Below are positions 3,576 through 35,629 of a stretch of 64,000 nt of DNA, one piece after another. The stretch is taken from IMG/VR virus record IMGVR_UViG_3300033049_000066, positions 124,001 through 188,000 of that record; one strand, written 5' to 3'. Under the pieces are notes generated by a model. The model made no database searches and was not told where the DNA came from. It saw nothing but the letters and a program-made list of their open reading frames with translations. Made by a program: the position numbers and the translations under genes. Every line of letters starts with the position of its first letter. Within the stretch, counting starts at the first letter, position 1.

Positions 3576-3836
3576 AATTTAACAAAGATAGATATATACA
3601 ATTGTAAGGATTGTTAGGTATTGCCTAATCTGTAGTAAGCATTTATGGAACAAGTAATGATTCACAAATTTAAACCGTCTTCAGAAAAAAATGAAAAGAA
3701 AATTGAACTCCGATTTAGCCAGAGAAAATTAATAACAGTTATTAACTACCCAGATGCAGACCCAAGAGATCGCATAGCTGATGAATATGAAGAAGATGAA
3801 CAAATTGAATAAATATAGCTAACAAAGGAATTAAAT

Positions 3837-4628
3837 ATGAGATCAACAGAATTTATAAACGAAGGCGTCGATAGAAATATCGCGGATGTTAAAGAAAATC
3901 ATCCGGACGTATATGCACTACTAAGTAAAATACTTGGATCTACGACGCTTGAAAAAAGTACTGTTAGCTCGTTTGACGCTGCTGGCGCGCACCAAGTCTT
4001 GGTACAAATTAAACCGTCAGCAGGACTAATTAATGCAGAGGCCGGATTCTATTCCGCTGGGATCGAATACGAAATAAAAATTGGGCCGGCGTCGCAAGGT
4101 GGGCTGAAATTACTTTCAGGATCCAACGGAGACATGAGCTGGACGGTAAAAGACAGTGGCCGAATCGGCAATTTTACACAGACCTGGCAGTTTAGTATAG
4201 CGAAAACCAACACCAACGAAGAGCTGGTTAGCGCACAGTCGGTTTTCGCTTCAAACGCTTCAAATATACTAGGACAAGAAGGCATTACGTTTTACGAAAA
4301 ACCTAGCTATTGGTCGGACTTAGAACGCAAAGCACTTAGCAATGACGCATTAAGAACTGCCGAATTTGCACTTGAAGAGGAAGGCATTGAGTTAAAAGAA
4401 TACGATGCGTTTGAAATATTTGCGATTAATCCTAATCGCAAATCTTCGTATGTTAGAGGACCGTTGCAGTCCGTAGAAAATATGCCGCAAGAAAAAGTGT
4501 TTGTAATACATAATTTGCCGTACAGCGACGAGGAACCTTCAGTCACGTCCGACCCCAAGGTGGGAACATTCTTAGTTGATGCACACGGCGCACATAGTTA
4601 TATTAGATCGTGGATTTTAATAAAATGA
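3837..4628 (+). CDS. Putative internal virion protein with capsid-targeting-like N-terminus
   Basis: MRSTEFINE N-terminus; ATAAATA at 3809-3815; AAGGA RBS. Confidence 0.65.
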   Translation: MRSTEFINEGVDRNIADVKENHPDVYALLSKILGSTTLEKSTVSSFDAAGAHQVLVQIKPSAGLINAEAGFYSAGIEYEIKIGPASQGGLKLLSGSNGDMSWTVKDSGRIGNFTQTWQFSIAKTNTNEELVSAQSVFASNASNILGQEGITFYEKPSYWSDLERKALSNDALRTAEFALEEEGIELKEYDAFEIFAINPNRKSSYVRGPLQSVENMPQEKVFVIHNLPYSDEEPSVTSDPKVGTFLVDAHGAHSYIRSWILIK

Positions 4629-4930
4629 AAAAAATTATTGCTAGGCTGCTAACACTGCCGGGCAGCTTAGTTAGATTGCTAACAGTTAAGATGAAACGAT
4701 GGTTCATCACTAAATATTTTAAATAACGAGACACAAATGAGATCAACAGAATATTTAATGATTTTATTAAAACGGGAGAACAATGATGGCTAAGCAGAGA
4801 CGGATTAAGAATCCGGTGGCAAGATGTATGACGCAAGTTACCCAGGCCACAACGCACAAGGATAAGAAAAATGATTATAAACGTAAATCAAAACATGCAA
4901 AAAGGTCGCAAGACCTTTTTCATTATGTAT

Positions 4931-5203
4931 TTAATCTTGTTTCTTCGTTACCCAACTTCGACCAGTCTTTAAGTACCAATCAATCATCTTACCGGCCAGT
5001 CCAAACAATGCCGGAATTGTAACACCAGCAAATGCACTTACTTCTACAGATCGTTCAATAGCAGGTAAACTCATGTACCATGCTGAAATATCATATATAT
5101 AAAAACCTGTAAACCACAAAACTGCGATCAATATGCTACGTGGTATAATTCTATACGCATCAAGCAATTCGGCCCCGTTTAGCCACCCTTCTTTATTTTC
5201 CAT
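4931..5203 (-). CDS. Putative holin-like two-TM protein
   Basis: Two TM helices, basic C-terminus, directly downstream of the spanin pair. Confidence 0.5.
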   Translation of the reverse strand: MENKEGWLNGAELLDAYRIIPRSILIAVLWFTGFYIYDISAWYMSLPAIERSVEVSAFAGVTIPALFGLAGKMIDWYLKTGRSWVTKKQD

Positions 5204-5246
5204 GTTATCTCCCATAAACATTGTAACAATATTTATATGAAAGAAA

Positions 5247-5642
5247 TTATTTTATAACTTCGAGGTCACTATCTCGTTTTTCAACAGCAATATAATAGGT
5301 TTTATACGCTTTAATCACGGCATTAAGTTGCTTAATTAGTACCTGCTGATCGCTAATATTAAGTGATAATAATTCATAATCATCACCTGCGAGCCCAATA
5401 ATTGCAACTGGTTTACCTTGCTTGTGTAACTGGGCGAAGACTTGATTAACGTTATCTGCAGTTACAACGATCCATTTTAACTCACGATGCACGTACCGAT
5501 CAGGTTCGGGAAGGACAAGTGGAATACGTTCCACTGGTTCAGTTTTCACTAACAAATCACGTGTCCAGCTGCATCCAGACAGCATCATTATGATTAATAG
5601 TACAGAAAATAGGTTAGTAAATAGGTTAGTAAATAGTTTCAT
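5247..5642 (-). CDS. o-spanin (Rz1-like lipoprotein)
   Basis: Lipobox LSGC after hydrophobic signal; Pro-rich segment; overlaps the i-spanin stop. Confidence 0.75.
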   Translation of the reverse strand: MKLFTNLFTNLFSVLLIIMMLSGCSWTRDLLVKTEPVERIPLVLPEPDRYVHRELKWIVVTADNVNQVFAQLHKQGKPVAIIGLAGDDYELLSLNISDQQVLIKQLNAVIKAYKTYYIAVEKRDSDLEVIK

Positions 5643-6118
5643 AGCTTTGGTTTGTAGTTCGGGTTCGCGATGTTCGGACAACTAGAATTTGTTTGACTTT
5701 TCTTAGTCGCAGTTAATTCTTTAGCTGTTAGCTCAGAACCGCTCAATATTTCAAAACATCGTCCGACATCAGAGGTGCCCTTGTTGACAATTTTAGTGAT
5801 AAGTCCAGGCTTGTTCTCTGCGAGGTATGCGAGATCGTGCTTTGCTAATTTTGTACGGAGCGCGTTATTTTCTGATCTAGCATTTCTGAACTGCTTACTC
5901 ACTAGTAGTACCTGCCGACCGCTACGCACAGCATCTTTCTCCATTGTCGAGATGGTCGCTTTTTGTAGCGTGACAGCAGTGCCAAGGCGAGAATTATTAT
6001 CCCTGAGCGTCTTGATTTCATCTTGTGACCAGCTATAGTACCAATACGCGCCGCCGGCAGCAGAGAATAGAAATATAGCGAGCACACCGTATATATATAA
6101 TTTTGCAGATCCAATCAT
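5639..6118 (-). CDS. i-spanin (Rz-like)
   Basis: N-terminal TM followed by coiled coil; paired with downstream lipoprotein. Confidence 0.75.
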   Translation of the reverse strand: MIGSAKLYIYGVLAIFLFSAAGGAYWYYSWSQDEIKTLRDNNSRLGTAVTLQKATISTMEKDAVRSGRQVLLVSKQFRNARSENNALRTKLAKHDLAYLAENKPGLITKIVNKGTSDVGRCFEILSGSELTAKELTATKKSQTNSSCPNIANPNYKPKL

Positions 6119-6276
6119 AATATTATTTAGCCTATCTAATAGACACGATGCAATAAATATGCTATAATATATGTCTTCATAAATATTCTAAGTATTGTTA
6201 AACTCGGCGCCAGTTACTTGTAGGCGTACCAACTAACGAGGTGGGGTGGTTATCCAAAACCGTACAATACGAATAT

Positions 6277-6420
6277 AGTGCTATTAAATCTGCCGCCACA
6301 AAGACTAACATCCTCTTAGCGGATGGCGTTCAACCAAGCGGATCACGGGTGGTATCCGGTTAGTTTATTATTTAACATTTGCCATATAGCACTTAGAGTC
6401 AACTGCGTCGCAGTTGACTC
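6277..6420. ncRNA. Candidate structured ncRNA followed by a perfect 11-bp hairpin
   Basis: AGTGCTAT(6277)/ATAGCACT(6386), GACTAAC/GTTAGTT, CATCC/GGATG; GAGTCAACTGC-gtc-GCAGTTGACTC. Confidence 0.4.
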
Positions 6421-6445
6421 GACTTAATAACAGTAGGACAGTACA

Positions 6446-6670
6446 ATGAGAATAATAAATAAAATTAAGAAATTGTTAACTCGTAAGAAAAGTGCCGAAG
6501 CCTTAAAAATGTGGGAGGGCCTCTGTGCCGCTCCAACCGAACCTTCCAAATCACTGGACATTGACGTGGGGCATTATATGTCCTTGCAAACGCAACGTGA
6601 AAAAGATCAGTACTTCATTGATTTAAACAGACGGCGTAGCAAGGGATATGAATATGAAAAATTGCCATAA
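6446..6670 (+). CDS. Hypothetical protein
   Basis: ORF with AGGA RBS. Confidence 0.5.
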   Translation: MRIINKIKKLLTRKKSAEALKMWEGLCAAPTEPSKSLDIDVGHYMSLQTQREKDQYFIDLNRRRSKGYEYEKLP

Positions 6671-6678
6671 ATACAAAT

Positions 6679-7098
6679 ATGAGAGCACAAGAATTTATTA
6701 AAGAAGTACAATCACAAGGTGAGATTCGAGGCCTTGAGGCCGAGTTAGACAATATGTTTAAGACCCTCGGGCTGGATGTTGAGTTCACATCACACTTTGT
6801 TGAAAGATTACTAGGGCGTGAGAAGCAAGTCACTTACAATGAAATACTAGCTGCGTTCGCCAAGTTAAAAAAGAAATATAAAAGACAGCTTCTTAAAGCT
6901 AAAAAAATAGACATGGGCCCGGCCGCACTACAAGATCTTGACAGTGACTTAAACGTTTTATTTGCGATACAACCAGACAAAAAGAACAATGAGTACGACC
7001 TAGTCAACATCACGGTCAAGCGTAAGGATCCTGAGAAATTTCACACAGACACACCAAGTGGCAACGCGACACCATTTAAAGTTGGATCAAAGAAATGA
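6679..7098 (+). CDS. Putative internal virion protein with capsid-targeting-like N-terminus
   Basis: MRAQEFIKE; ATAAATA at 6667-6673. Confidence 0.7.
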   Translation: MRAQEFIKEVQSQGEIRGLEAELDNMFKTLGLDVEFTSHFVERLLGREKQVTYNEILAAFAKLKKKYKRQLLKAKKIDMGPAALQDLDSDLNVLFAIQPDKKNNEYDLVNITVKRKDPEKFHTDTPSGNATPFKVGSKK

Positions 7099-8057
7099 GA
7101 GCACAAGAATTTATTAAAGAAGGTGGCTGGTCATCTGTCACAACACAAGGCACAATTATCACACCACAAACGATTGCTAATAGCATTTCAGTAATGAAAT
7201 CATTTCAGGATTCATTTAATGAACTGTTGGCTAGTCAAGATATTCCACCAATTAAGATTGGTAATCCGGTCGGAAGTGGCACTTACTATAAACGTGACTT
7301 AGCTCAAAACCCAGACAAAGAGTACGGTGATATTGATGTTCAATTCATTCTGCCTCGCATAGAAGGAAAATCTACTAACCAAGCACAGCAGATGTATTTT
7401 AATGCTGTGAAAGAGTTCTGTCGACAAAATGCGAATTTCGAAACAGATAACGGAATGAACGTAATCTTCCAAATCGGTGATGATTTTATTCAAGTTGATC
7501 TCGTTGCGATATTTGACGATCGCTTGGAATTTACAAAGGCACTGGCGCCCGAACACGGTACAAAAGGCGTCTTGAGCGGTAGCTTGTATTCTGCGTTAGG
7601 GCAGGCTCTCGACATTAGTATAAGTGATGCTGGAATTCAAGGCAAAACTATAGATGATAAACTTGTAAGCTACCGTAAATCCAAGGGCACAACGCTCAAC
7701 ACAATCTCAACTGATCATCAAAATTGGGCGATGGATATCGCTAAATTCATGGGTGCGAAGACCGCATCCCCGCTGCTTAAAAAGTACCCTGGCATGAAGG
7801 ATGAGGTTCGCATAGCAGATATTGTCAAATCTGTCAAGGGAATTGCGCAGACATTAGCACAGAATCATATTTTGCCAGTGCCGTACTGGGACGCAGAAGA
7901 GCTGATACAAACAGTCCGTGATATTTATGTACAGAAAATCAACGCTGTGATCAACTCCTCCAAGTTCAACAAGGCTGAAGGCGCGGCAGTAGCAAAGGCC
8001 GCTAAGATCAAAGATATGCTAGCTACACGCAGCGCAGAAATCGCCAGCCTTTTCTAG
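7095..8057 (+). CDS. Pol-beta-superfamily nucleotidyltransferase with capsid-targeting-like N-terminus
   Basis: MRAQEFIKE; VGSG...YGDIDV...IQVDL motifs. Confidence 0.7.
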   Translation: MRAQEFIKEGGWSSVTTQGTIITPQTIANSISVMKSFQDSFNELLASQDIPPIKIGNPVGSGTYYKRDLAQNPDKEYGDIDVQFILPRIEGKSTNQAQQMYFNAVKEFCRQNANFETDNGMNVIFQIGDDFIQVDLVAIFDDRLEFTKALAPEHGTKGVLSGSLYSALGQALDISISDAGIQGKTIDDKLVSYRKSKGTTLNTISTDHQNWAMDIAKFMGAKTASPLLKKYPGMKDEVRIADIVKSVKGIAQTLAQNHILPVPYWDAEELIQTVRDIYVQKINAVINSSKFNKAEGAAVAKAAKIKDMLATRSAEIASLF

Positions 8058-8137
8058 TCACATTGCGCGATTTAAACCGCTTACAGACGCTTACAGCGCG
8101 TCAAATTCTCACGTAACCTATTGATTAAACTAAATTG

Positions 8138-8222
8138 TAAGTCATTGATTCTTGGGTAAAATAGAAGTTGACCTTTTGGGCTAAATGTTATATAATATAT
8201 AACAGTTCGGAAACGAGCAACA
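8138..8222 (+). promoter_or_regulatory. Repeated early promoter cassette (IHF box + TTGAC-17-TATAAT + conserved leader)
   Basis: TAAGTCATTGATT 8138-8150; TTGACC 8168; TATAAT 8191; AACAGTT..GCAA leader. Confidence 0.85.
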
Positions 8223-8225
8223 ATT

Positions 8226-8546
8226 ATGAATACAGTACAAAACACATTCGATCGCTTGAAGTACGACATCCAAGAAGATGATTATGGCAGCCGATATTGG
8301 TACATAAATGGTGAATTGCACAGAGAAGATGGGCCTGCTATTGAATTCGCAAATGGTGCTAAGTGGTGGTACAGAAATGGCAAATTACACAGAGAAGATG
8401 GCCCAGCAATTGAGTTTGCGGATGGCTCCAGGGCCTGGTACAGGCATGGCATAAGACACAGAGATGATGGACCGGCTGTTGAATATTCAGATGGCGAAAC
8501 ATACTGGTACATACACGGTGAGGGTCGCGGTGAGGAGGGACCTTAG
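8226..8546 (+). CDS. HR(E/D)DGPA-repeat protein
   Basis: About 23-aa repeats WYxNGxLHREDGPAIE. Confidence 0.85.
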   Translation: MNTVQNTFDRLKYDIQEDDYGSRYWYINGELHREDGPAIEFANGAKWWYRNGKLHREDGPAIEFADGSRAWYRHGIRHRDDGPAVEYSDGETYWYIHGEGRGEEGP

Positions 8547-8554
8547 ATATTTAC

Positions 8555-8640
8555 TAAGTCATTGATTCTTGGGTAAAATAGAGGTTGACCTTTGGCGCTA
8601 TATGTCATATAATATATATAACAGTTAGATAACAAGCAAA
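8555..8640 (+). promoter_or_regulatory. Repeated early promoter cassette
   Basis: IHF box 8555; TTGACC 8585; TATAAT 8608. Confidence 0.85.
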
Positions 8641-8659
8641 CAAACAATCAGGTGGTATT

Positions 8660-8863
8660 ATGAACAAATTGTTATTAATCGGGTTAGGCACTACGTTGTT
8701 AATTGGATGGAGTGACTGGGCAGTATCAGCACCGTTAATTGACCAGCATCCACTTGAGCTTATTTCTGAAGAAGAATGTGCTGAGCGACGAGCCGAGCGT
8801 GATCGTATGCAGGCACACGAAAAACAAGAATCAGTTGCGTTTTTTAAGAGATGGGAAATATAA
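8660..8863 (+). CDS. Small secreted or membrane hypothetical protein
   Basis: Signal-like N-terminus behind promoter. Confidence 0.55.
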   Translation: MNKLLLIGLGTTLLIGWSDWAVSAPLIDQHPLELISEEECAERRAERDRMQAHEKQESVAFFKRWEI

Positions 8864-11264: not shown

Positions 11265-12086
11265 ATGATTAAAAACGTTTTTATCAGGACCCGGCCGGGC
11301 ATCGATCCGAACATCACCGACGGCCTGTTAATTGCCGTCGGTGATTGTATTCGTGAAGCTGGACTGTATATTATCACGCAGAAAGACGAAATAGATGATA
11401 GTACGCTGGTATTATCGCTAGGTGGTGATGGCACGATGATATCGTCGATTTACTTAGCATCAAATCGTGATTCTTATGTTGCTGGTTTTAACTACGGCGA
11501 TCTTGGCTATTTAGTGCCATGCACCGCGTCGTCTACTAACGATTTAATCGCGCAATTAACGGCATTAATAACCGATGTTAATTTTCCGGATTCGACTAAG
11601 TCGACATTTAAAGTAACAAAAGTTCATTTGCCGGTCCTAACCTGGAAGAAAAATCAAGCAATAAATGATTTTTATTTTACACCAGCAGCGAACGGGACAG
11701 CGGCGGATTTTAAAATTGCAATTGGATCGGTTAATGCCGCATTTCATACAAAAAGTTCCGGCATTGTACTTTCGACACCGTTTGGATCAACAGGGCTCGC
11801 GCTTTCTGCGGGTGGACCAATACTAACACCAGACAGCAATGTTTTAGAAATTGTACCATTATTACCGCATACTCTCACCTCGCGCCCGATAATATTCCCG
11901 TACACAGAGAAAGTGGTGATTACATGGGAACGTAAGATTAACATGTTTGCTGATGGTCATCTTATTGATACATTTGGAGATGGCGAGGTTGAGATCAAGT
12001 GCACCCAAGGGAAAATTAACCTCGTGCAGCCAGTCAACTGGAACTTTGTTGAGAATCTCAAAAACAAAATGCGTTGGCATTCGTAG
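11265..12086 (+). CDS. nadK: NAD kinase
   Basis: SLGGDGT, GDLGYL, IND, STPFGSTGLALSAGGPIL, PHTLTSRP. Confidence 0.92.
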   Translation: MIKNVFIRTRPGIDPNITDGLLIAVGDCIREAGLYIITQKDEIDDSTLVLSLGGDGTMISSIYLASNRDSYVAGFNYGDLGYLVPCTASSTNDLIAQLTALITDVNFPDSTKSTFKVTKVHLPVLTWKKNQAINDFYFTPAANGTAADFKIAIGSVNAAFHTKSSGIVLSTPFGSTGLALSAGGPILTPDSNVLEIVPLLPHTLTSRPIIFPYTEKVVITWERKINMFADGHLIDTFGDGEVEIKCTQGKINLVQPVNWNFVENLKNKMRWHS

Positions 12087-13191: not shown

Positions 13192-14190
13192 ATGAAAAAA
13201 ATTGTAAGAATGGTATTTGGTTCCCACATGTACGGATTAGATACGCCGAATTCTGATATGGACTACAAGGGTATTTACTTGCCGGACCTCGACGAGCTAT
13301 TGCTTGGTACGGCAGCGAAGAATATCAGTTTCACCACCGGCGATAACACGTCCAGGAATGGTGCTGAGGACGTCGACGAAGATTGGATGTCGTTGGGCGA
13401 GTTCATGAAGCTTGCGTTGAAGGGTGAGACTGTGGCACTGGATATGCTTCACGTGAATCCTGACTTGGTGAACGTCGAGCTTGATCCTGAATATGGTTAC
13501 ATTTGGACCGAGTTAGTTAAATTACGCCACTTGTTTTACACTAAGAATCTTAAATCTTACATGGGATACGTCAAGAAACAAGCAGCAAAGTACGGCCTCA
13601 AAGGTAGCCGCATTGCGAATATGCGCGAATCTATTAAAGTGCTTGAGCAGTTTAATGTAGAGCTACTGTTATCTGACGTATGGTACGGGCTGCCTGAGAA
13701 TGAATACGCTAAGAAGATTGAGATGCAGACAAAAACCGGCCAGACAAATCATTTCTACGAAGTGAACATGAAAAAGTATCAGGATACAAATTCTGTCGGA
13801 TATGCCCTGGAACGGATTCAAACCGCGCTGGATAGCTACGGTAATCGTGCTCTGCTAGCTGAGAAGAATGAAGGGGTTGATTGGAAAGCAGTCTCCCACG
13901 CTCTCCGTGCTGGATTTCAGTTGCGCGGCATTTTAAAGAGTGGTGGGTTTAGCTATCCACTCAAAGAAACCGAGTACCTCGCAAAAGTTAAGGCAGGTGA
14001 GCTTGATTACAAAACAGAAGTATCAAACGTGCTAGAAGCTGTAATTACGGAAATTGACGAACTTGTGTTAGTATCCGATTTACCGCAGACCGTAGATGTT
14101 AAATTTTGGAATAACTGGCTTTTGTTTGTGTACATGACTGCCCTGGCAGTACCGGACGTTAACAAATTTATGGAGGCACAAGATGAATAA
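13192..14190 (+). CDS. Phage nucleotidyltransferase (Nuc-transf-type)
   Basis: FGSHMYGLDTPNSDMDYKGIY; DWKAVSHALR. Confidence 0.85.
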   Translation: MKKIVRMVFGSHMYGLDTPNSDMDYKGIYLPDLDELLLGTAAKNISFTTGDNTSRNGAEDVDEDWMSLGEFMKLALKGETVALDMLHVNPDLVNVELDPEYGYIWTELVKLRHLFYTKNLKSYMGYVKKQAAKYGLKGSRIANMRESIKVLEQFNVELLLSDVWYGLPENEYAKKIEMQTKTGQTNHFYEVNMKKYQDTNSVGYALERIQTALDSYGNRALLAEKNEGVDWKAVSHALRAGFQLRGILKSGGFSYPLKETEYLAKVKAGELDYKTEVSNVLEAVITEIDELVLVSDLPQTVDVKFWNNWLLFVYMTALAVPDVNKFMEAQDE

Positions 14191-20309: not shown

Positions 20310-21091
20310 CTCTGCTTATTATTATATTCATCAACTGAATTCTTTAGCGTTTCGTACGATATCGAACAGTTAGTTTTCTTTTGATTATTTTTGGTCCAGG
20401 ACATTAATTCACAATTTAGCGGGTGTTTTATATAATAAGGGTCGTATCCGTTACGGATTGCAGTATTTACAGAAACCTTATGATCTCGAGTAATTCCTGA
20501 TGTATTTGAATACGACCACATTCCGTGTTCTTTAAGTATGCTGTTGTATTGCTCAAACAATTCCGGATAATTAGATAATGAAAACGTAAACGCATATCTG
20601 TTTCGATTATTTCGTTTATATAGATATGCGTGGTCGTTACAATATTTTTGTTTAATTCGTGAAATAAATTTTTCATTACAATGAGCACACTTTGTTAACC
20701 AAATTTTTGAATATGGCGAAGTTACTTTAGGCTTCTTTACTTTAGGCTTCTTTACTTTAGGCTTTGCTGGGTATTTTTCTTTAAGTGTTTTGGACAATTT
20801 TTTATAATGTTCGGTATCTCGTGCAAGATTATTGCATGTAGCTGAACAACTCCTTGAGCAAAATTTATTATGTCGCTGGATATACGGTAACGCAATCTCG
20901 CAGTGTCTACAGGCATTAGGATTTTCGCTGTATTTAAAAAGAACTATCTTATGATTTTTGCGGATGGCGCTTAATGTAGATTTTGCGTTATTAATCTTGT
21001 GTTGGTGATAGCCGGACTTATGCACTTTATTATGAGCTGATAATCCATATACTGATTTAAATTCTTTATCGCATGTTTTACATTTATACAT
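20297..21091 (-). CDS. Free-standing HNH homing endonuclease with zinc fingers
   Basis: C2H2 finger, CRHC..FCSRSC, TRDHKVS..IKHPLNCEL..NNQK; ATAAATA upstream. Confidence 0.8.
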   Translation of the reverse strand: MYKCKTCDKEFKSVYGLSAHNKVHKSGYHQHKINNAKSTLSAIRKNHKIVLFKYSENPNACRHCEIALPYIQRHNKFCSRSCSATCNNLARDTEHYKKLSKTLKEKYPAKPKVKKPKVKKPKVTSPYSKIWLTKCAHCNEKFISRIKQKYCNDHAYLYKRNNRNRYAFTFSLSNYPELFEQYNSILKEHGMWSYSNTSGITRDHKVSVNTAIRNGYDPYYIKHPLNCELMSWTKNNQKKTNCSISYETLKNSVDEYNNKQSSRY

Positions 21092-21158
21092 GTAACTATT
21101 TATAATATTTTGAGGTTCCGTTAAACTTTCAGGAGCCAAATTACATATAAATACAGTT

Positions 21159-21506
21159 ATGAAAATATTATTATCGATATTGCTGCTGCTAATTTCTTTA
21201 AGTAGTCAAGCAGAGCCGGGATGGAAAGTATTCGCAGAATTCTTCCTTCTAGACAGAGCCGAAGTATATTGTGGCAAAATCAAGGGTGACCGAGACATAA
21301 CTAAAATATTTACAAATAGGAAAAAAATAGCACTATCGGAAGTTGTCGACTCTGGCACATACTGGTGTGGAGTAACATACAATATGTCTGCAATTGGTGT
21401 GCCATTTGAGAGCAACCCAACCGAGCTAGAGCCAGTGCTAATGACAGTCGGACAGGGTGCAGAAATATTGGTATCGTCACCGAAACCCCCTAGTAATATA
21501 CAATAA
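21159..21506 (+). CDS. Secreted small beta-rich protein
   Basis: Signal peptide SQA/; TATAAATA upstream; ends PKPPSNIQ. Confidence 0.7.
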   Translation: MKILLSILLLLISLSSQAEPGWKVFAEFFLLDRAEVYCGKIKGDRDITKIFTNRKKIALSEVVDSGTYWCGVTYNMSAIGVPFESNPTELEPVLMTVGQGAEILVSSPKPPSNIQ

Positions 21507-22004: not shown

Positions 22005-22045
22005 CACAAGAGTCTACATCAAGACTCGAACTGATAAATAAAAGT

Positions 22046-22723
22046 ATGAAAACATATTATACAATTTATCAAGTTACAAACCAAGTAAACGGCAAAACCT
22101 ATATAGGAGCACATAAGACCAAAAACTTGAATGATGGCTACATGGGGTCAGGTAAATACGTAAACCGTGCTATATCAAAGCACGGGATAGATAAATTCAC
22201 AAAAGAAATACTCTTTATATTTAATAGCGCAGCTGAGATGTACGAAAAAGAAGGTGAGCTAGTTAACGAAGAATTTATTACAGAAGCTAATACATATAAC
22301 TTAAAAATTGGCGGATTTGGCGGATTTGACTACATTAATCAAAACCCAGAAATGCAAAATAACAGAACACCCGAAAGTATCTCCAAGGGCGGCCAGACGA
22401 CATGGACCAAACACAAAAAACAAATAAAAACACGCCTTAAAGAAAATAACAAAAATTTATGGAAGTTTCACTACAGCAAAATGAAAGAGCTTTCTAAAAT
22501 CGGAGTAGCAGCAATGAGCTCCCCGGCCGCCGTGGCTAAGAAAAAACAAACATTTGCGAAAATATCGCACCAGCAAGGGATTCGCAATTCGCAATTCGGA
22601 ACGATGTGGATTACCGATGGTATTGTAAACAAAAAGATTAAAAAAACTACCCCAATGCCAACCGGGTTTCGTAAAGGTAGAGTATTAAAACCACACCAAA
22701 CTAAAAGAATTATTGAGAAGTAG
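22046..22723 (+). CDS. Free-standing GIY-YIG (Seg-like) homing endonuclease
   Basis: TIYQVTN..NGKTYIG..GYMGSG..E..YNL; C-terminal GTMWITDG..GFRKGR. Confidence 0.9.
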   Translation: MKTYYTIYQVTNQVNGKTYIGAHKTKNLNDGYMGSGKYVNRAISKHGIDKFTKEILFIFNSAAEMYEKEGELVNEEFITEANTYNLKIGGFGGFDYINQNPEMQNNRTPESISKGGQTTWTKHKKQIKTRLKENNKNLWKFHYSKMKELSKIGVAAMSSPAAVAKKKQTFAKISHQQGIRNSQFGTMWITDGIVNKKIKKTTPMPTGFRKGRVLKPHQTKRIIEK

Positions 22724-23295: not shown

Positions 23296-23344
23296 AATAA
23301 AATATAATCAATAACCTGTAAATCAATAACCGATAAATATACGT

Positions 23345-23677
23345 ATGTGGTCTTTTATAAAATTAGGTGGGTGGGTTGTGATCTGGAGTGTTCTCTGGAT
23401 TTTTTTATTACCGTTCCGGAAGGGCAGGCACAATTGCTTAACATGGGCAGTTGAAAGATGGGACACTGAAGGCGGGTATTTAGTTATTCGGTGGTGCCGG
23501 TCAAACAACCAGCAGTGGTTAAAATGGCCACACTTCCTCTGGATGGACGAAAAAGAATATAAACGTGTGGAACATCTTATTCCGCATCCCGAAGACGCAA
23601 AGAAGCACACGTTACCTCGACCTTGGTTTGACGGTAGACACGCAAAGGCCGATCCAAAAGGTCAAAACGAAAACTAA
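23345..23677 (+). CDS. Hypothetical membrane-anchored protein
   Basis: ATAAATA upstream; N-terminal TM; NC...WPHF. Confidence 0.6.
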   Translation: MWSFIKLGGWVVIWSVLWIFLLPFRKGRHNCLTWAVERWDTEGGYLVIRWCRSNNQQWLKWPHFLWMDEKEYKRVEHLIPHPEDAKKHTLPRPWFDGRHAKADPKGQNEN

Positions 23678-24130: not shown

Positions 24131-24241
24131 GAGGCGAGGAAAAATGGATGGCAGTCTTAAATACTTGTCGAGAATCCCTTATCATTTGGCTCTGTCAGGT
24201 TGAATGGTTGGGGTAACTTATTTTAACTGATAAATAACTGT

Positions 24242-24634
24242 ATGAAAAGTGCAGAATTTATAGTAGAAGGTACAGAAATCGTTGTAGGCGATCAAGTCGT
24301 TGCGAAGCGTTCCGCTCGTGGTGGGGACTTGGGTCCAGCGATACACATGGCAGTGACAAAGGATGAGTGGGATCGTGTCAAAGGTCAACGTGCAAATACA
24401 GATATTCAATCCTACGATATTGCTACAGCTGAAACGATTGTCAATGACATGGTAAAGCAAGGTGGTGAGATCATATGGAAATCAGCAGCAGAATATAATG
24501 CTGATGCACGTGAACTTGAAAATCACAGATTTAGAAACAATGCTGATGTCCAAAGTGGATTTGCCGCAGCAATCAACAGCACACGTGATAACGCCAGCGC
24601 AACCGCAAAAGCGTCACTATCACGAATTAAATAA
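24242..24634 (+). CDS. Putative internal virion protein with capsid-targeting-like N-terminus
   Basis: MKSAEFIVE; ATAAATA upstream. Confidence 0.7.
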   Translation: MKSAEFIVEGTEIVVGDQVVAKRSARGGDLGPAIHMAVTKDEWDRVKGQRANTDIQSYDIATAETIVNDMVKQGGEIIWKSAAEYNADARELENHRFRNNADVQSGFAAAINSTRDNASATAKASLSRIK

Positions 24635-25061: not shown

Positions 25062-25919
25062 CTAAGGGTTGATTTCTGGCGGCAGGGGTGCTGATATGAT
25101 TGCGGTAGGCACATAACTTCCAACCCCAACATAATTGTTTCCATGTGAATCTTTGTTTGTTGGGCGAGTGCTAGTAACAATCACGTCGTCTACATACGAA
25201 TTTTGTGTTTGGGGTGACCCTCTCGGAGTATCTGGAGTATCGTTCCAGTAAGTATAAATGTATAATGAATTAGCGTAATCTGTAGCTGCTCTAAAAGTTA
25301 CACGATTAGTAATGTCTTTCATCAGCTTACCGTTTTTCCACACTCGAACGCGACCAGTGCCACCGTTATCAACAGATTTTGTACCGAACTTAATATACAT
25401 CTCATAGGTTTCCCAGACGCCTAGTTTTATGACGTCGGAAGATGTTCCGAACTTAGTCCATCCTAAATCGGCTCTACTTGAACCTTCGTAAATAAATTGA
25501 AATGGTGGTACGCTACCTTTACGGTTAATATACCAATCATCATATCCGCCATTTGACCCGTCTTGCCTAAAAGTTTTAATGCGTAAGAATTTTAATCGAG
25601 TGCTTGCATTATAATCGAAACCAATCGGAAAGTAGTTTCGCATTCTTACCCATATCTCGTCGCCATTTTTTAATGTGCTAGGGAATTTAATAATACCGCC
25701 CCATTCACCAAATCCTCTGGATCCTTTGGCGATCCTAAGTTTGCATGATTTACTTTGACTAGCGGCAGCGGCACTACTAACAACTGACCTAGTTGAGCTC
25801 CAGCCTGCGCATTTTTCACCATTTGATTGAGAGTCAAAAGATTGATTTATAGTCCACGCATTTGCGGTACTTGCTAGCAAACTTGTAATTAATATTATTA
25901 TTTTAAAATAGGTTATCAT
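25062..25919 (-). CDS. Secreted polysaccharide-lyase-like beta-sandwich protein
   Basis: Signal ANA/W; WVR..YFP.GF, LKFLR, WETYEMY, GRVRVWKNG, YVDDVIV; paralog of 34310. Confidence 0.7.
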   Translation of the reverse strand: MITYFKIIILITSLLASTANAWTINQSFDSQSNGEKCAGWSSTRSVVSSAAAASQSKSCKLRIAKGSRGFGEWGGIIKFPSTLKNGDEIWVRMRNYFPIGFDYNASTRLKFLRIKTFRQDGSNGGYDDWYINRKGSVPPFQFIYEGSSRADLGWTKFGTSSDVIKLGVWETYEMYIKFGTKSVDNGGTGRVRVWKNGKLMKDITNRVTFRAATDYANSLYIYTYWNDTPDTPRGSPQTQNSYVDDVIVTSTRPTNKDSHGNNYVGVGSYVPTAIISAPLPPEINP

Positions 25920-25974
25920 ATTAGTATTTATTAGAGAATTTTTTATTAATGATTACACAACCATAAATAAATAT

Positions 25975-26346
25975 ATGAAATACATACACGGAACCATATA
26001 CGGAATAATACCAATACCAGTTTTTTATGTTGATGATTTAGACTGGGCAGCTGGTAGATCATACGGATTTTTCATCCGTATTAAAAAAGATTACAAAGAT
26101 GATCGCGGGCTGCTCGAACACGAACTACAGCATTGTCGACAATTTTACAGAACACTAATGCTACATCCACTTCTGTACAAGTTCTCTAAAACATACCGTT
26201 ACAATTCAGAACTTGAATGTTACAGAGTACAGCTATCGTTTTCGCAAAATAAAAATCGATCAGCAAAACATTTTGTAAAATACATAACAACTTGGTATAA
26301 GTTAGACGTGTTGCCCGGCAAGGCACTGAGTGATCTTTTAGATTAG
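25975..26346 (+). CDS. HEXXH zincin-like protein
   Basis: LLEHELQHCRQ...ELECY. Confidence 0.65.
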   Translation: MKYIHGTIYGIIPIPVFYVDDLDWAAGRSYGFFIRIKKDYKDDRGLLEHELQHCRQFYRTLMLHPLLYKFSKTYRYNSELECYRVQLSFSQNKNRSAKHFVKYITTWYKLDVLPGKALSDLLD

Positions 26347-29985: not shown

Positions 29986-29991
29986 AACAAT

Positions 29992-30201: not shown

Positions 30202-30262
30202 CCTTTGCGCATTCAACCACCCCTAAGTACATTTACGTTACAACACATGATAAATACTTACT

Positions 30263-30484
30263 ATGAAAGCAAATGAAATTATGCACGAAAGAACTAGTAA
30301 CCGCATTAAGGTACAAATGCACGAATACGGACCTATTGGTAATCGAAAATATTCATTAGTGGATATGCGAACTCGTAAGACACGAGCTACATCGTTCAAC
30401 GGACAGTTTGAGGCGAAAGCATACGCAAACAAAAGGAATTGGTTTATTAGCCCCGTTAATATAATCGAACCCGTTTCCAATTAA
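30263..30484 (+). CDS. Small putative internal virion protein
   Basis: MKANEIMHE; ATAAATA upstream. Confidence 0.6.
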   Translation: MKANEIMHERTSNRIKVQMHEYGPIGNRKYSLVDMRTRKTRATSFNGQFEAKAYANKRNWFISPVNIIEPVSN

Positions 30485-30574
30485 TCAAGTTAACCTAAAT
30501 ACTAGACATTAGTCCTAAACGATAGTATAATTGTACAAAGAATCATATACAATTTAACACTAACCAGGACCTCT

Positions 30575-31735
30575 ATGAAAACAAAATTCATGATCGGCGG
30601 TGATACCGTACACGTATTCAATATGAACGAAGAACTAGCGTTGGATAAACTCCCGCCACGGATCTACACCGTCCGGTTTGACCCACTACAGGGCTTTCAT
30701 CTTGGCATCACAAAAGATAAGCTTGACTTGCCTAGTAAGATTTACGGTGAGACTCCAATGCGTGTACAAAAGTGTATAGATACATATACCGATCGTACTG
30801 CATCTACCGGCATTTTATTAACCGGTGATAAAGGTACAGGCAAAACATTATTGATGTCGTTGCTTGCAAATGAAATAATTAGCAAATTAAAATTGCCAGT
30901 AATACTCATTAAAGAGGCATACGAAGGTGGTGCGTTTACAAACTTCATTGAATCCATTGGCGAATGCGCTCTTGTGTTTGACGAATTCGGGAAAATGTAT
31001 TGTCCAAATTCGAGACGCAACGAGAATGATATACCTCAAACCTCATTATTATCATTAATGGATGGGGTTGACAAAACCAAGCGTATGTTTATTTTGACTG
31101 AAAACAGCGAGCTGGACATCAACGACTTCATGCTAAATCGTCCGAGTCGCATCTACTATCACTTCAAGTACAACAAGCTTGACGAAGGCAGCGTCATCGG
31201 CTACTGCGAGGATTATAAGGTCGGCACCGAGGAGATAAGAGATATCGTAGATCTTGCTCGGCGCTCACAGGTTTTTAGCTTCGATATGCTCCAGACTATC
31301 GTCGAGGAGCACCAGCGTTACGGTACGTCAATAGGCGAGGTTGCGGAAGATTTAAATATCGACACGCGCGAAGAACAGGGCGATATGATTGAGGTGCTAA
31401 AAATACTCGAGCGTGGCACGAAAAATGAGCGTGAGATCTATGGCACGCCGTACGTCACAAAACCTAACAGTAGCTACACGTACATCAACATCAAGGATAA
31501 TAAAATTGAAAGTTCTGAGGTTGAGATGCCAACTGCAACGGCAGTGGATAGCACTGATAGCAGCGAAGATAGCCCTGTATGCGCAAGCGAGGAAAATAAC
31601 TATCGCTCCGAGTACGTCGAGGCGAAGAACTTAGCTTACGAAAAAGATGGGCAGCTGGTTTACGAAACAGAAAAATTCACCTTCATCGCAAAAGATATGC
31701 CCAAGCTTCAAACAAATTATTTGAAATTTTTCTAG
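30575..31735 (+). CDS. AAA+ ATPase
   Basis: GDKGTGKT, LVFDEFGK, LLSLMDG, NRPSR. Confidence 0.9.
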   Translation: MKTKFMIGGDTVHVFNMNEELALDKLPPRIYTVRFDPLQGFHLGITKDKLDLPSKIYGETPMRVQKCIDTYTDRTASTGILLTGDKGTGKTLLMSLLANEIISKLKLPVILIKEAYEGGAFTNFIESIGECALVFDEFGKMYCPNSRRNENDIPQTSLLSLMDGVDKTKRMFILTENSELDINDFMLNRPSRIYYHFKYNKLDEGSVIGYCEDYKVGTEEIRDIVDLARRSQVFSFDMLQTIVEEHQRYGTSIGEVAEDLNIDTREEQGDMIEVLKILERGTKNEREIYGTPYVTKPNSSYTYINIKDNKIESSEVEMPTATAVDSTDSSEDSPVCASEENNYRSEYVEAKNLAYEKDGQLVYETEKFTFIAKDMPKLQTNYLKFF

Positions 31736-31744
31736 GTAAACGAA

Positions 31745-32137
31745 ATGCGCACTAAATTATTAATTCTTGTAACTTTAACAGCACCACTATTTTTAATTGA
31801 CTGGTCGGCCAAGGAGAAGAGTTCCGGTGGTGAGGTCGACGCACTTTACTGGCACGGAGGGAGTCGCTACACCGTGAAGGACGACAATGGGGGCCTGATC
31901 ACAAGCAGAACGATACCGCCCTGGGGTAGTCCACACAACGGCAATGTCATTGTGTACAGTGATCTTGCTCCGGGAGAAAAAACTTGGTATCTCTGTGAGT
32001 GGGATTGGAGTTGGATGTACGGCACGATGGGTGGGGATGCGAATTGTGAAATTCACATTCACGGACTAGATGATATCATCCCCGGTAATTGGGATCATGG
32101 CAAATTTGGCAGAGGGTCAATCACACGCATAGAATAA
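31745..32137 (+). CDS. Membrane-anchored hypothetical protein
   Basis: Hydrophobic N-terminus; WDHGKFGRG. Confidence 0.65.
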   Translation: MRTKLLILVTLTAPLFLIDWSAKEKSSGGEVDALYWHGGSRYTVKDDNGGLITSRTIPPWGSPHNGNVIVYSDLAPGEKTWYLCEWDWSWMYGTMGGDANCEIHIHGLDDIIPGNWDHGKFGRGSITRIE

Positions 32138-32157
32138 AATATCGCCAAAAAGAATAC

Positions 32158-32233
32158 AGTGACATAGCTCAATTGGCAGAGCACGAAGCTCATAACTTCG
32201 AAGACGCAGGATCGTTGCCTGCTGTCACTACCA
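32158..32233 (+). tRNA. tRNA-Met(CAT)
   Basis: AGTGACA/TGTCACT; ctCATaa; CCA. Confidence 0.88.
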
Positions 32234-32270
32234 GACACTGAACAAATAGCAGTTAACTGCAGGAGGTAAC

Positions 32271-32747
32271 ATGTTCACCGTAGATGAAAAAACAGAAATA
32301 GTACAGTACTTAAAAGATATGCCCGCGAATTCCTCAGTGTATATCGGTTCTGACTCCGTGAAATACAAACGCAAGGGGTTATGGTACGCTCGGTACAACG
32401 TAGCATTCATTGTCCACATTGCATCAAAGCACGGTGGTAAGATTTTTCACACTACATCTGTCGAACGTGATTACGATCCTAAGAAGGAAAAGCCTCGTAT
32501 GCGACTAATGACCGAAGTATACAAAGCCGTAGGTGTTTACATGGAATTCGCGGAGGTACTTGAAGATTTACCTGTCGAAATCCACATCGATGTTAATTCA
32601 GATGAGAAGCACAACTCCAGCATCGTGCTGCGAGAAGCACTTGGCTACATCAAAGGAATGACCGGACTAGATGGAGTGCCTAAGCCAGATGCCTGGGCCG
32701 CATCGACGGTTAGTGATTACGGTGCCAGAGGGAAATTTACACACTAA
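32271..32747 (+). CDS. RNase H-like YkuK-family protein
   Basis: VYIGSDS, RLMTEV, EIHIDVN, KPDAWAAS..SD. Confidence 0.85.
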   Translation: MFTVDEKTEIVQYLKDMPANSSVYIGSDSVKYKRKGLWYARYNVAFIVHIASKHGGKIFHTTSVERDYDPKKEKPRMRLMTEVYKAVGVYMEFAEVLEDLPVEIHIDVNSDEKHNSSIVLREALGYIKGMTGLDGVPKPDAWAASTVSDYGARGKFTH

Positions 32748-32776
32748 GGATTCAATCGCGCAAGGATGCGCATTTT

Positions 32777-32852
32777 GCCGTCGTAGCTCAGTTGGTAGAG
32801 CGCAGACCTGGTACGTCTGAGGTCATCGGTTCAACCCCGATCGTCGGCTCCA
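32777..32852 (+). tRNA. tRNA-Thr(GGT)
   Basis: CAGAC-ctGGTac-GTCTG; CCA. Confidence 0.9.
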
Positions 32853-32892
32853 ATTTTAGATGCATTATAATGCTCGTATGATAAATACCGTT

Positions 32893-33876
32893 ATGCCAAG
32901 ACATAAAAAAATCGCGCAAAGACATGCGAAAATTCTTAATATACAGAATCCCGCAACAGGGAAATTTGAGTTAGATAAAATTAAAACAAAATACGATAGA
33001 ATCCTTAAATACTCATTTGCGGAAATATATATTATAGACGCTGGAACTATGAAGTTCACCGAAGTCAGCGCAAACGCACTGCGGAACCTCGGCTACACGC
33101 TGGCGGAGATGCAGAAGATGAAGGCTGGTGACGTCGCACCTCAGCTTTCTGCCGGGCAATGTAACAAGATTTTTGTTGCGTTGAACAGTGGGGAAAATGA
33201 GGTCGCGAAGATGAAAACAGTTATTTTGCGCAAAGATGGATCAGAGTACAAAGTTAATCTTCGCGTACAGTACGCGAGTGGTGAAGACCCAGTGTACATC
33301 ATAATGGCGTCGGACATCACAGAACGTGACAGGTACGAAGCTGAGTTAAAAGCCCTTGCCTTCCGAGACCCCGGCACAGATTTGTACAATAGACGGTACT
33401 TCTTAGAACACCTTAGGGGAACGATAAACCATGCTAACAGAATGCACTCTCCTATTGGATTAATTTTAATCGACATGGATGATTTTAGTAAGGTCAATAA
33501 CAATTACGGACACATCGCTGGTGACAAGGTAATCTCAGATTTTGCAAATAAGATATGCGATGTATTTTCAAGGAAGACAGACGTCGTAGCAAGATACGGT
33601 GGGGATGAATTTGTAGTGCTGTGTATCGACAATTCCGCTGAAACATTAATCGCAAAATGTAACCAGCTTATAGCTCGACTAAACAAAGCATTGTACTACG
33701 ACGGTCACACAATTGTCCAAACCGCAAGCATAGGCATTTGCCACTACAACGCGAATGCTATAACAATCTCAACTGAGGATCTTATTAACGGTGCTGACAT
33801 TGCTATGTACAAGGCCAAGGCAGCTGGTAAAAATCAAGTCAAAATATGTAACAACGACGACCTCAATGAGGATTAA
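32893..33876 (+). CDS. PAS-GGDEF diguanylate cyclase
   Basis: PAS (..RKDGS..DITE), NRRYF, IDMDDF..VNN.YGH.AGD, RKTD I-site, RYGGDEF; start placed after ATAAATA. Confidence 0.92.
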   Translation: MPRHKKIAQRHAKILNIQNPATGKFELDKIKTKYDRILKYSFAEIYIIDAGTMKFTEVSANALRNLGYTLAEMQKMKAGDVAPQLSAGQCNKIFVALNSGENEVAKMKTVILRKDGSEYKVNLRVQYASGEDPVYIIMASDITERDRYEAELKALAFRDPGTDLYNRRYFLEHLRGTINHANRMHSPIGLILIDMDDFSKVNNNYGHIAGDKVISDFANKICDVFSRKTDVVARYGGDEFVVLCIDNSAETLIAKCNQLIARLNKALYYDGHTIVQTASIGICHYNANAITISTEDLINGADIAMYKAKAAGKNQVKICNNDDLNED

Positions 33877-33894
33877 TGGCAATAATATTTAGGA

Positions 33895-34205
33895 ATTACT
33901 ATTTGAAGCTAAAGTAGGTTATCACGGACAAGGGTGCAAATCCCTTCATTTCCACCAAAAGCATCTTTTTACAAGGGTTCTTTTGGGGGATGATTTCAGA
34001 TTCGACGTGGGACTGAGGATAAGTGGATAGTACGGCAACGCAGAAGTCGTGACACTTGAAGAAGCAAACTTAAAATAATCGCAAACGATTCATTTTACAC
34101 TGAGGAATTAATGGCTGCGTAAAGCGCCACCCTCTGAGGTTGAAACAGCCTTATAACCAGCTTGTTAGTCGTGCCCTATTGACGAATGAACACAATGTAG
34201 GGGAC
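33895..34205 (+). ncRNA. ssrA: Circularly permuted (two-piece) tmRNA; tag ANDSFYTEELMAA*; outer boundaries approximate
   Basis: T arm + CATTTCC-ACCA (ends 33957) lies upstream of GGGGATG...GATTCGAC (33986); tag at 34081-34122. Confidence 0.88.
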
Positions 34206-34216
34206 GCGATACTTTT

Positions 34217-34290
34217 GACTCTATAGCATAATGGCAGTGCGAGGGATTGCAAATCCTTAGATCCCGATTCGACTTCGGGTAGAGTCTCCA
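34217..34290 (+). tRNA. tRNA-Cys(GCA)
   Basis: GACTCTA/TAGAGTC; ttGCAaa; U73-CCA. Confidence 0.9.
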
Positions 34291-34309
34291 TTAATCTAGG
34301 AAAAATATT

Positions 34310-35128
34310 ATGAAATATGTTATCTTTTTTACACTACTATTACTCGCGGCGCCAGCACAAGCATGGGTTGTTAACGCAAATTTTGAAAACGGCAATATAG
34401 GGAGCAAAGCCAAAGGATCCGATGGATTCAATAGTTCATTTTCAAATACAAAATACACGAATGCGGTAGTACATAGTGGAAGACAGGCTGCTGTCACCTC
34501 AATAAAACAAGGTGAATACGGATTTGGTAAATGGGGTGGCTTAATAAGATTACCGGCGACCCTTGGTGAGGGTAAGCAAGTATGGTTTCGTGCGTGGATT
34601 TATTACCCGGCCGGATTTAGTTTTACTAACAATGGCATTGGGGTAAAAACATTACGGTTACATACAAAATCATCTACTGGAAGCAATGATGGCTACTTCG
34701 ATGTGCTAACTAATAAAAATGGACTCACTGTTGGGATCGAGCAAACGAGCAAAATATTTATAAAAAATAACCCAAATTGGAGAGATGTGAGCTCCGGAAT
34801 TTCAACTGGTGTATGGTATGCCTACGAAATGTATGTAAAACTTTCGTCAGTGCCAGGCAAGGGAATATACAGAGTTTGGCTAAATGGAAAGTTATTACTT
34901 AATGATACAAAAACACCGACTCTGAAATCAGCAGGGTCCAAGGCAGACTTTATATATATTTGGTCTTATTTCAATGGTAGTTCACCTAAGGATCAAAAAG
35001 CGTACGTTGACGACATTATTATTACCAATGAAGTCCCGGGCGGCCGCGATGCACAAGGAAATAGATTTATTGGTATTGGTACTCAAACATGGACTGCTAG
35101 ACCAAAACCCCCAACACCTAACGAATAA
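34310..35128 (+). CDS. Secreted polysaccharide-lyase-like beta-sandwich protein
   Basis: Signal AQA/W; paralog of 25062-25919. Confidence 0.7.
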   Translation: MKYVIFFTLLLLAAPAQAWVVNANFENGNIGSKAKGSDGFNSSFSNTKYTNAVVHSGRQAAVTSIKQGEYGFGKWGGLIRLPATLGEGKQVWFRAWIYYPAGFSFTNNGIGVKTLRLHTKSSTGSNDGYFDVLTNKNGLTVGIEQTSKIFIKNNPNWRDVSSGISTGVWYAYEMYVKLSSVPGKGIYRVWLNGKLLLNDTKTPTLKSAGSKADFIYIWSYFNGSSPKDQKAYVDDIIITNEVPGGRDAQGNRFIGIGTQTWTARPKPPTPNE

Positions 35129-35139
35129 TTTCGCAGTAT

Positions 35140-35607
35140 TTAACGAGCGATGGTTATGTGTATTCCAACAACGGGGTTACCAGCTGTGACATTTTTGTGC
35201 TGGACGAATGAAATCTGTGGTGGCTGCCGGTCGCCGTATCCGTCCGGGGTCGGCATCGCTGTGTAGGTGATAGTCTGCGCATCTTCATCGCGCTTCAGCT
35301 TGGTAATACTCTTACGCGCACCATCTTGAAAGAATCCGTACAGCGCACCAATCACATCTTTTTGCACTGCTCCTGCTTCTGCAGGATCAGGGCCATTGAA
35401 GTACAGCCCGGTGTCAAGAAAGGTGTTTTTAACTTCCCAACTATCTCCCTTAGCGTACTTCGCAATAATATTGCTAAGCAGCTTCTTCACAGTCCATGCT
35501 TGCGATCTGTCCATCGTGCCAGTTTGAATCGCGTATCGAAGTTTTTCAACGTCCGACTTAGTAGGTGCTTTTTTCTTTGGTGCTTCTGTAATTTCTTTGA
35601 ATCTCAT
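35140..35607 (-). CDS. Putative internal virion protein with capsid-targeting-like N-terminus
   Basis: MRFKEITE; ATAAATA upstream. Confidence 0.65.
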   Translation of the reverse strand: MRFKEITEAPKKKAPTKSDVEKLRYAIQTGTMDRSQAWTVKKLLSNIIAKYAKGDSWEVKNTFLDTGLYFNGPDPAEAGAVQKDVIGALYGFFQDGARKSITKLKRDEDAQTITYTAMPTPDGYGDRQPPQISFVQHKNVTAGNPVVGIHITIAR

Positions 35608-35629
35608 AATACTATTTATCTAAATAGAA

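Follow-up and report, generated by a model that had tools for sequence, protein, structure and literature searches.

Six predicted late genes in a 64,000-nucleotide stretch of viral DNA, which we call the window (bases 124001-188000 of one 293,278-bp virus record in IMG/VR, IMGVR_UViG_3300033049_000066), start with variants of one leader peptide of eight or nine amino acids and continue with proteins that are otherwise unrelated. We think that this shared N-terminus is probably a capsid-targeting propeptide of the kind known from phage T4: the proteins that carry it would be packaged in the phage head, cleaved, and delivered with the DNA. More generally, sequence comparisons support the view that unrelated late proteins carry the leader as an N-terminal tag that can be detached. 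The mechanism itself was described in T4, and others have already proposed that it serves for varied cargo. What is new is the lineage, the nine-residue consensus, the number of carriers per genome, the spread in the environment, and the list of cargos; a literal search of about 8.4 million papers for six common spellings of the nine-residue leader found none that has them. The original prediction listed six open reading frames (ORFs) with their N-termini and a remnant of a seventh leader, and all six ORFs are present as described (aa, amino acids):

3837..4628, plus strand: tagged ORF, 263 aa, MRSTEFINE followed by G; three metagenomic homologues keep a leader (MKSAEFTTE then G, MNSTEFLGE then G)
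4737..4793, plus strand: leader remnant, an 18-codon ORF starting MRSTEYL
6679..7098, plus strand: tagged ORF, 139 aa, MRAQEFIKE followed by V; homologue of gp42 of the sea-ice phage PANV1
7095..8057, plus strand: tagged ORF, 320 aa, MRAQEFIKE followed by GGW; predicted Pol-beta-superfamily nucleotidyltransferase body
24242..24634, plus strand: tagged ORF, 130 aa, MKSAEFIVE followed by G; matches phrog_38700
30263..30484, plus strand: tagged ORF, 73 aa, weaker leader MKANEIMHE followed by R; basic, with a pI of 10.7 without the leader
35140..35607, minus strand: tagged ORF, 155 aa, eight-residue leader MRFKEITE followed by A (short form)

The protein bodies are indeed unrelated, as had been claimed: with residues 1-10 removed, no pair reached E < 0.1 in BLASTP. 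The homologue of the 24242 protein in Sinorhizobium phage phiM9 has no leader at all, and its alignment begins at query residue 11. The leaders themselves can be close to identical as DNA. ORFs 6679 and 7095 have the same first 28 nucleotides (nt), and the first 16 nt of the remnant at 4737 are those of the 3837 leader, so we consider 4737 a real relic rather than a chance resemblance. (The remnant is followed by an unrelated 79-aa ORF with its own Shine-Dalgarno sequence.)

The leader is also found outside the window. Five more carriers lie elsewhere in the record, and so the 293-kb genome has at least 11 of them, scattered at 15, 96, 128-160, 246, and 286 kb:

genome 15390: MRANEFIME followed by G
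genome 96194: MKPQEFITE followed by A; ATGA-coupled
genome 96870: MKVNEIIKE followed by T
genome 245764: MKSTEFITE followed by W
genome 286404-286745: MRADEFVTE followed by T; 113 aa, a member of the FKGYKK family described below

The motif M[KR]xxE[FI][IVMT]xE has 10 matches in a six-frame translation of the genome, every one of which starts an ORF of at least 56 aa, while about 0.004 matches per 411 N-termini would be expected by chance. Chance is thus excluded. A DNA pattern for the leader gave the same picture, with 10 matches forward, none in reverse, and none in a control that was read backward. Counted from Met1, the leader is 8-9 residues long in 11/11 genes. The bodies behind it range from 56 to 320 aa; without the leader, five of these cargos have a basic pI (9.2-10.7), as compared to an acidic or nearly neutral one for the others. 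Two other genes start with what may be longer, degenerate versions of the leader. The one at genome 58581 is a strong candidate (MRLYEFATDLIE then GG, 377 aa, with a late box 21 nt upstream), and the one at genome 98031 is a possible second (MKLHEMFNGDVKE, 534 aa).

What does the leader resemble? In the T4 genome (AF158101), the internal-protein genes ipII and ipIII start with MKTYQEFIAE, which is the capsid-targeting sequence (CTS), and the hypothetical protein gp61.1 starts with MKTFKEFIKE. The N-termini of T4 gp67, gp22, gp21, and Alt have x-L-I-x-E stretches. The likeness to T4 that was originally noticed is borne out, as M[KR]xxEFIxE has EFIxE in common with both of the T4 spellings, and the leader does end at the site of the T4 prohead protease, I-x-E, in 9/11 genes (the other two end in V-T-E, at genome 286404, and M-H-E, at 30263). 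The first 10 residues of IPIII suffice for packaging, and mutagenesis of the T4 CTS has assigned residues 4 and 7 (Tyr and Phe) to targeting and residues 8 and 10 (Ile and Glu) to processing (PMC9026906). Of these residues, Phe, Ile, and Glu are retained in the present leader, at the equivalents of T4 residues 7, 8, and 10; the Phe is present in 8/11 genes. T4 gp61.1 (AF158101 18966-19130) has just 54 aa and adjoins the primase gene, so a CTS-like leader also occurs outside of the internal-protein genes of T4.

Judging from its genes, the record is a seawater jumbo phage of the T4 superfamily. It has 41.6% G+C and an estimated completeness of 83% (CheckV), and the only sequencing runs that contain the window in full are two seawater metagenomes. 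For the RNA runs of the source study, the shared fraction of the region's words is 15% at most. A megablast of the region against cultured phages found no relative. The capsid gene is 65-69% identical at the nucleotide level to those of Sinorhizobium phage Phosso (the top match), of Rak2-like phages (Salmonella phage 7t3, which is among the nearer cultured relatives), and of PA5oct-like Pseudomonas phages.

The genome encodes the machinery that a T4-type CTS would need. We found a gp21-type prohead protease (Peptidase_S77, E 4e-24, genome 247032-247664), a Gp23-type major capsid protein (E 2e-97), a T4-type portal (Portal_T4, E 7e-102), and a scaffold gene that matches phrog_10922; in terms of Pfam, PF03420, PF07068, and PF07230 are all matched in this leader-bearing genome. 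The head module runs portal, small ORFs, protease, scaffold, capsid, which is the T4 gene order. A tagged ORF of 112 aa lies between the portal and protease genes. We had considered it as a counterpart of gp68, and we dropped this idea: four relatives have no such gene in their head modules, so it is an insert rather than a gp68 orthologue. A search for homologues of this ORF found only itself.

The original prediction placed five of the six genes directly behind an ATAAATA box, which resembles the core of a T4 late promoter, and the sixth, 7095, in translational coupling with 6679. Both statements are correct, as the spacings from box to ATG are 21, 5, 5, 6, and 5 nt and the start of 7095 overlaps the end of 6679 as ATGA:

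3809..3815, plus strand: ATAAATA late-promoter-like box, 21 nt before the ATG of 3837, with an AGGA Shine-Dalgarno sequence between
6667..6673, plus strand: ATAAATA box, exactly 5 nt before the ATG of 6679, without a Shine-Dalgarno sequence
24230..24236, plus strand: ATAAATA box, 5 nt before the ATG of 24242
30250..30256, plus strand: ATAAATA box, 6 nt before the ATG of 30263
35613..35619, minus strand: ATAAATA box, 5 nt before the ATG at 35607

The association extends to the whole genome. A box lies within 40 nt of the start in 6/11 tagged genes as compared to 39/403 other genes (Fisher p = 3.6e-4). Of the 11 tagged genes, six have a box of their own, and the other five come second or third in a run of same-strand genes with a box at its head. 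ATAAATA also precedes the portal gene and several very large structural ORFs, and a gp55-type late sigma factor is encoded at genome 232325-234295 (phrog_12791, E 2.5e-69, and phrog_234). So the sequence has both of the features that go with the gp55-dependent late promoters of T4, TATAAATA, namely ATAAATA before structural genes and a gp55 homologue, and the tagged genes would be expressed late, with the head proteins. Immediately upstream of the box, 17/21 cases have G or C, not T as in the T4 consensus.

It had also been suggested that late promoter and tag form one portable module. The part of this that stands is the tag, which is detachable and occurs on unrelated proteins. The promoter is not part of the module: the regions upstream of the tagged ATGs have nothing in common beyond the 7-nt box, and the box is generic, as it heads about 45 genes genome-wide, so promoter and tag are not a single mobile unit.

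The short spacings are a subject of their own. Given T4-type spacing between promoter and start site, a box 5 nt before the ATG would give a leaderless late mRNA, and such mRNAs are predicted for the four of six window genes with a box 5-6 nt before the ATG. Genome-wide, 21 genes have exactly 5 nt between box and ATG and another 5 genes have 6 nt, in each case without a Shine-Dalgarno sequence; permuted boxes, as a control, gave 0-2 cases at 5 nt. A second class of boxes has a spacing of 18-28 nt and an AGGA. The 119 related IMG/VR loci that were listed have the same spike at 4-8 nt, with 58 cases at 5 nt. Spacings below 12 nt were absent from 40 kb of T4 and from 17-kb samples of 7t3 and Phosso. 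The box-plus-5-nt sites in the window are:

6667-6681, 21147-21161, 22034-22048, 23333-23347, 24230-24244, 25963-25977, and 32881-32895, plus strand
35605-35619, 25917-25931, and 21089-21103, minus strand

Putting these observations together with what is known of T4, we suggest the following. Late in infection, the tagged genes would be read from ATAAATA promoters of the gp55 type, some of them directly and others as later members of a run. With its nine residues, M-[RK]-x-x-E-F-I-x-E, the leader would dock the proteins on the scaffolding core of the assembling prohead, and the gp21-type serine protease (Peptidase_S77) would cut after the final Glu of the I-x-E site. The mature proteins would then remain in the head alongside the DNA and be delivered with it into the host at the next infection. 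The docking, cleavage, retention, and injection steps are inferred by analogy, as they are carried over from T4.

The leader is widespread in environmental viruses. We scanned IMG/VR with a degenerate DNA pattern for M-R-x-x-E-F-I-x-E-G, and at least 119 contigs carry MRAxEFIxEG, with nearly all of the matches at the starts of ORFs. Most of these contigs are fragments of phages of 300-500 kb. Ala occupies position 3 in 85% of the listed matches, even though the pattern left this position free. Among the matches listed, 196 tagged ORFs fall into 50 clusters by their bodies, and the largest cluster accounts for 117/196 of them. Its members are 90-141 aa long (around 125 aa) and include the ORF at genome 286404. 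They have a conserved C-terminus, SPVxxFKGYKK, and often occur as tandem copies. The AlphaFold model of the 113-aa FKGY protein has a mean pLDDT of 61, which is too poor for a structure search. The prohead protease accompanies the leader about as often as predicted if there is one protease per genome: among the matches listed, Peptidase_S77 is found in 4/5 large tagged contigs, including 3/3 of those that are at least 90% complete, and in 5/13 tagged fragments that are 21-51% complete, where about 4 would be expected.

The cargo at 7095 is the only one with a predicted activity. Scans of the tagged proteins against Pfam and PHROG found no informative family, and for the 113-aa and 263-aa proteins the ESM Atlas returned only unnamed viral clusters or matches with TM < 0.35. 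The 7095 protein itself has no Pfam match and no tblastn match among cultured phages, and a search of IMG/VR for related loci found none; it was the degenerate DNA pattern that succeeded instead. Nevertheless, its AlphaFold model is confident (mean pLDDT 91, pTM 0.87), with residues 1-10 alone disordered (pLDDT 37). By VIA, the model resembles the palm and thumb of Pol X (Z 9.2), it matches an AFDB cluster named "Nucleotidyltransferase" at TM 0.84, and the same domain is fused to ParB/Srx in a protein of an uncultured phage (TM 0.94). G60, S61, D79, D81, and D135 are invariant across 32 homologues. We therefore describe the body as a Pol-beta-superfamily nucleotidyltransferase, a confidently modelled assignment by fold and motif.

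The homologues of 7095 also tell us about the leader. There are 79 of them in metagenomes, and their leaders include MRAxEFIxE, MKINEIIxE, MRFREIxE, MKLADLFE, and MKTFKEFLLE. In most of those with a leader, its final Glu stands directly before an invariant GGW. Four homologues begin MGGW or MEGGW instead, which is at or next to the predicted point of cleavage. In one of these homologues, P0054, the leaderless start is genuine, because there are in-frame stops just upstream. Co-folding of the S77 protease with residues 1-30 of 7095 gave a score of 0.00, which argues neither for nor against cleavage. In a metagenomic relative (L139:6942-8069), the nucleotidyltransferase is leaderless and the next gene, which encodes a DUF6267 protein of 375 aa, starts with MRAQEFLIRE. 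Other neighbours start with MRAAEILRN and MRFFEFDIN, so there are also leader-like starts that lack the I-x-E end.

Several observations weigh against a T4-type capsid-targeting function. The phage is uncultured and is known from seawater metagenome sequence alone. Two of the window members have a weaker motif, as 30263 ends in M-H-E and 35607 has the eight-residue leader (the short form does recur, as MRFREIxE in homologues of 7095, which makes it a natural variant). The leader here has nine residues instead of the ten of the T4 CTS. It also has Ala or Ser at the position of the aromatic residue 4, which is a targeting residue in T4. Finally, the DNA pattern for the leader has no matches in Salmonella phage 7t3 and one in Sinorhizobium phage Phosso, so the leader does not simply track the gp21/gp23 machinery. 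The same counts imply that the nine-residue form is lineage-specific.

Could the leader be concerned with processing only? It might be removed by the prohead protease or by another protease, or it might keep enzymes inactive, while the proteins act in the cell that produced them. The I-x-E end and the leaderless homologues show that there is a detachable piece, not that it targets anything, and the absence of aromatic residue 4, which contributes to targeting in T4, fits this idea. Nevertheless, we consider it unlikely. The S77 protease of T4 works inside proheads (PMC9026906), so its substrate would normally have to be there. And Phe, the second of the T4 targeting residues, is the best conserved residue of the leader (184/196 ORFs, among the matches listed).

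It seems to us quite improbable that the leader sends proteins elsewhere, for example to the membrane or to another part of the virion (tail or baseplate), or that it gives them another fate, for example degradation by a host protease (as a degron). The leader has no hydrophobic stretch and no features of a signal peptide, and its closest match is the experimentally defined head-targeting leader of T4.

If selection acted on the nucleic acid rather than on the peptide, then the first 27 nt might serve to enhance the start of translation on leaderless late mRNAs, or they might be a site at which genes are shuffled by recombination, similar to the PeSLs. The short box spacings in four of six window genes would suit the former. 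The 28-nt identity of 6679 and 7095 and the 16-nt relic at 4737 would suit the latter, as they show that recombination at the leaders does happen, and PeSL-mediated shuffling is known in T4-type phages (PMC2839356). We still think that such selection is a very poor explanation for the leader. Synonymous codons vary freely at every conserved residue (for Ala, there are 86 GCA, 30 GCC, 23 GCT, and 18 GCG among the matches listed), which argues for selection on the peptide. Also, the leader is found behind a Shine-Dalgarno site (3837) and in ATGA-coupled genes (7095 and genome 96194), and 21 other box-plus-5-nt genes lack it. The small size of the genes and their clustering in a variable region of the genome might also suggest a single family of paralogues that have diverged so fast that nothing but the N-terminus can still be recognized. 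This is hardly credible, given bodies of such different lengths without BLASTP similarity, one of them with a nucleotidyltransferase fold. Also, a given body can be found elsewhere behind another leader or without one, and the environmental ORFs form many clusters.

So we favour a T4-type capsid-targeting propeptide. We offer a broader proposal tentatively, as something that may well be true although we would not quite bet on it: MRAxEFIxE followed by G would be the address label of a large clade of uncultured aquatic T4-superfamily phages of roughly 260-520 kb, whose head cargo could be read from metagenomes and would comprise at least 50 families, including the nucleotidyltransferase and the ubiquitous tandem 125-aa FKGYKK protein. 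In these phages, many late genes, the tagged ones included, would be on leaderless mRNAs, as appears to be the case because the late box is exactly 5 nt before the ATG.

Why would this matter? Phage proteins that are carried in the head act before any phage gene is expressed. Those of T4 include the anti-restriction protein IPI* and Alt, which modifies the host RNA polymerase. If we are correct, then candidate first-strike proteins of uncultured jumbo phages can be listed from the sequence alone, and the list of cargos, with the nucleotidyltransferase first, is a source of candidate functions in host takeover or counter-defence. The T4 CTS, although defined in the T-even phages, would also turn out to be far older than they are and far more widely distributed. 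The natural series of leaders (8, 9, or 10 residues, or none) could be used to work out how the core of the prohead recognizes its cargo.

The tagged genes sit in a variable, accessory region of the genome. Also encoded in the window, the first five of them in this region, are:

581-1408: HhH-GPD glycosylase
11265-12086: NAD kinase
13192-14190: RlaP-type nucleotidyltransferase
22046-22723: GIY-YIG (SegE-like) endonuclease
30575-31735: AAA ATPase
32860-33876, plus strand: diguanylate cyclase with a GGDEF domain (E 4e-41) and, as a weak match, PAS; the in-frame ATG at 32893 follows a late box at a distance of 5 nt

The gene for the late sigma factor is unusual. When T4 gp55 was compared directly to the genome, there was no match; a weak local tblastn match pointed to the ORF, and PHROG then confirmed it. 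The predicted protein has 656 aa, as compared to the usual length of about 185 aa. Between its phrog_12791 and phrog_234 halves, at about residues 228-559, is a LAGLIDADG_3 domain, apparently an intein. The ORF beside it starts with MIFTDIHFG and is Mre11/gp47-like by eye; this is presumably a parallel to T4, in which gene 47 is near gene 55.

How do these leaders compare to known systems? The closest is the CTS of IPII and IPIII of T4, which has the same extreme N-terminal site and about 10 residues (PMC9026906, PMC3012670; Mullaney and Black 1996). In both cases, the sequence is carried by otherwise unrelated proteins, and a gp21-type protease is encoded along with a scaffold and a gp23-type shell. 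The consensus here, MRAxEFIxE then Gly, differs from that of the T4 CTS, and the phage is an uncultured marine jumbo phage that is far from the Tevenvirinae. There are also more carriers, at least 11 as compared to three T4-length EFIxE matches in T4 (ipII, ipIII, and gp61.1). That the CTS is an evolutionary device by which T4-like phages pack varied proteins has been proposed before (PMC9026906).

The polymorphic internal-protein loci of the T-even phages offer a second parallel. According to PMC3012670, which cites Repoila et al. 1994, the T-even internal proteins are a highly diverse set with the CTS alone in common, and these loci also hold unrelated proteins that turn over quickly behind a conserved CTS. 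As in the T-even loci, the relics and the duplicated leaders here point to the replacement of genes behind the leader. On the other hand, the T-even internal proteins are in one locus, while the carriers here are scattered and none of them resembles a T-even internal protein.

PANV1 (Paraglaciecola Antarctic GD virus 1, MW805361), a cultured T4-like phage from sea ice whose host is Paraglaciecola IceBac 372, also has leader genes, and its gp42 is a homologue of the 6679 protein. The leader of gp42 has ten residues, MKSFEQYIEE, and is within a run of such ORFs: six PANV1 ORFs start with MK[ST]Fxx[FY][ILM]xE, and five of these are in the gp41-gp48 stretch (MW805361 20162-26647). So the leaders of PANV1 have the ten-residue, T4-like form, whereas the 293-kb genome has none of that form. 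The published description of PANV1 does not mention the leaders and includes no virion mass spectrometry.

The propeptides of the phiKZ-like phages and SPN3US are long and varied and are cut at [AGS]-x-E, and we know of no short portable leader among them. These giant phages are similar in having many head-internal "ejection" proteins that are trimmed by a T4-related prohead protease (PMC5694885, PMC10052503). Finally, the Alt ADP-ribosyltransferase of T4 is an enzyme that is carried in the head, is injected, and has a short leader ending in I-x-E (MELITE). The fold of Alt is not the Pol-beta-type nucleotidyltransferase fold of 7095, but as an enzyme behind such a leader, the 7095 protein would be an analogous cargo.

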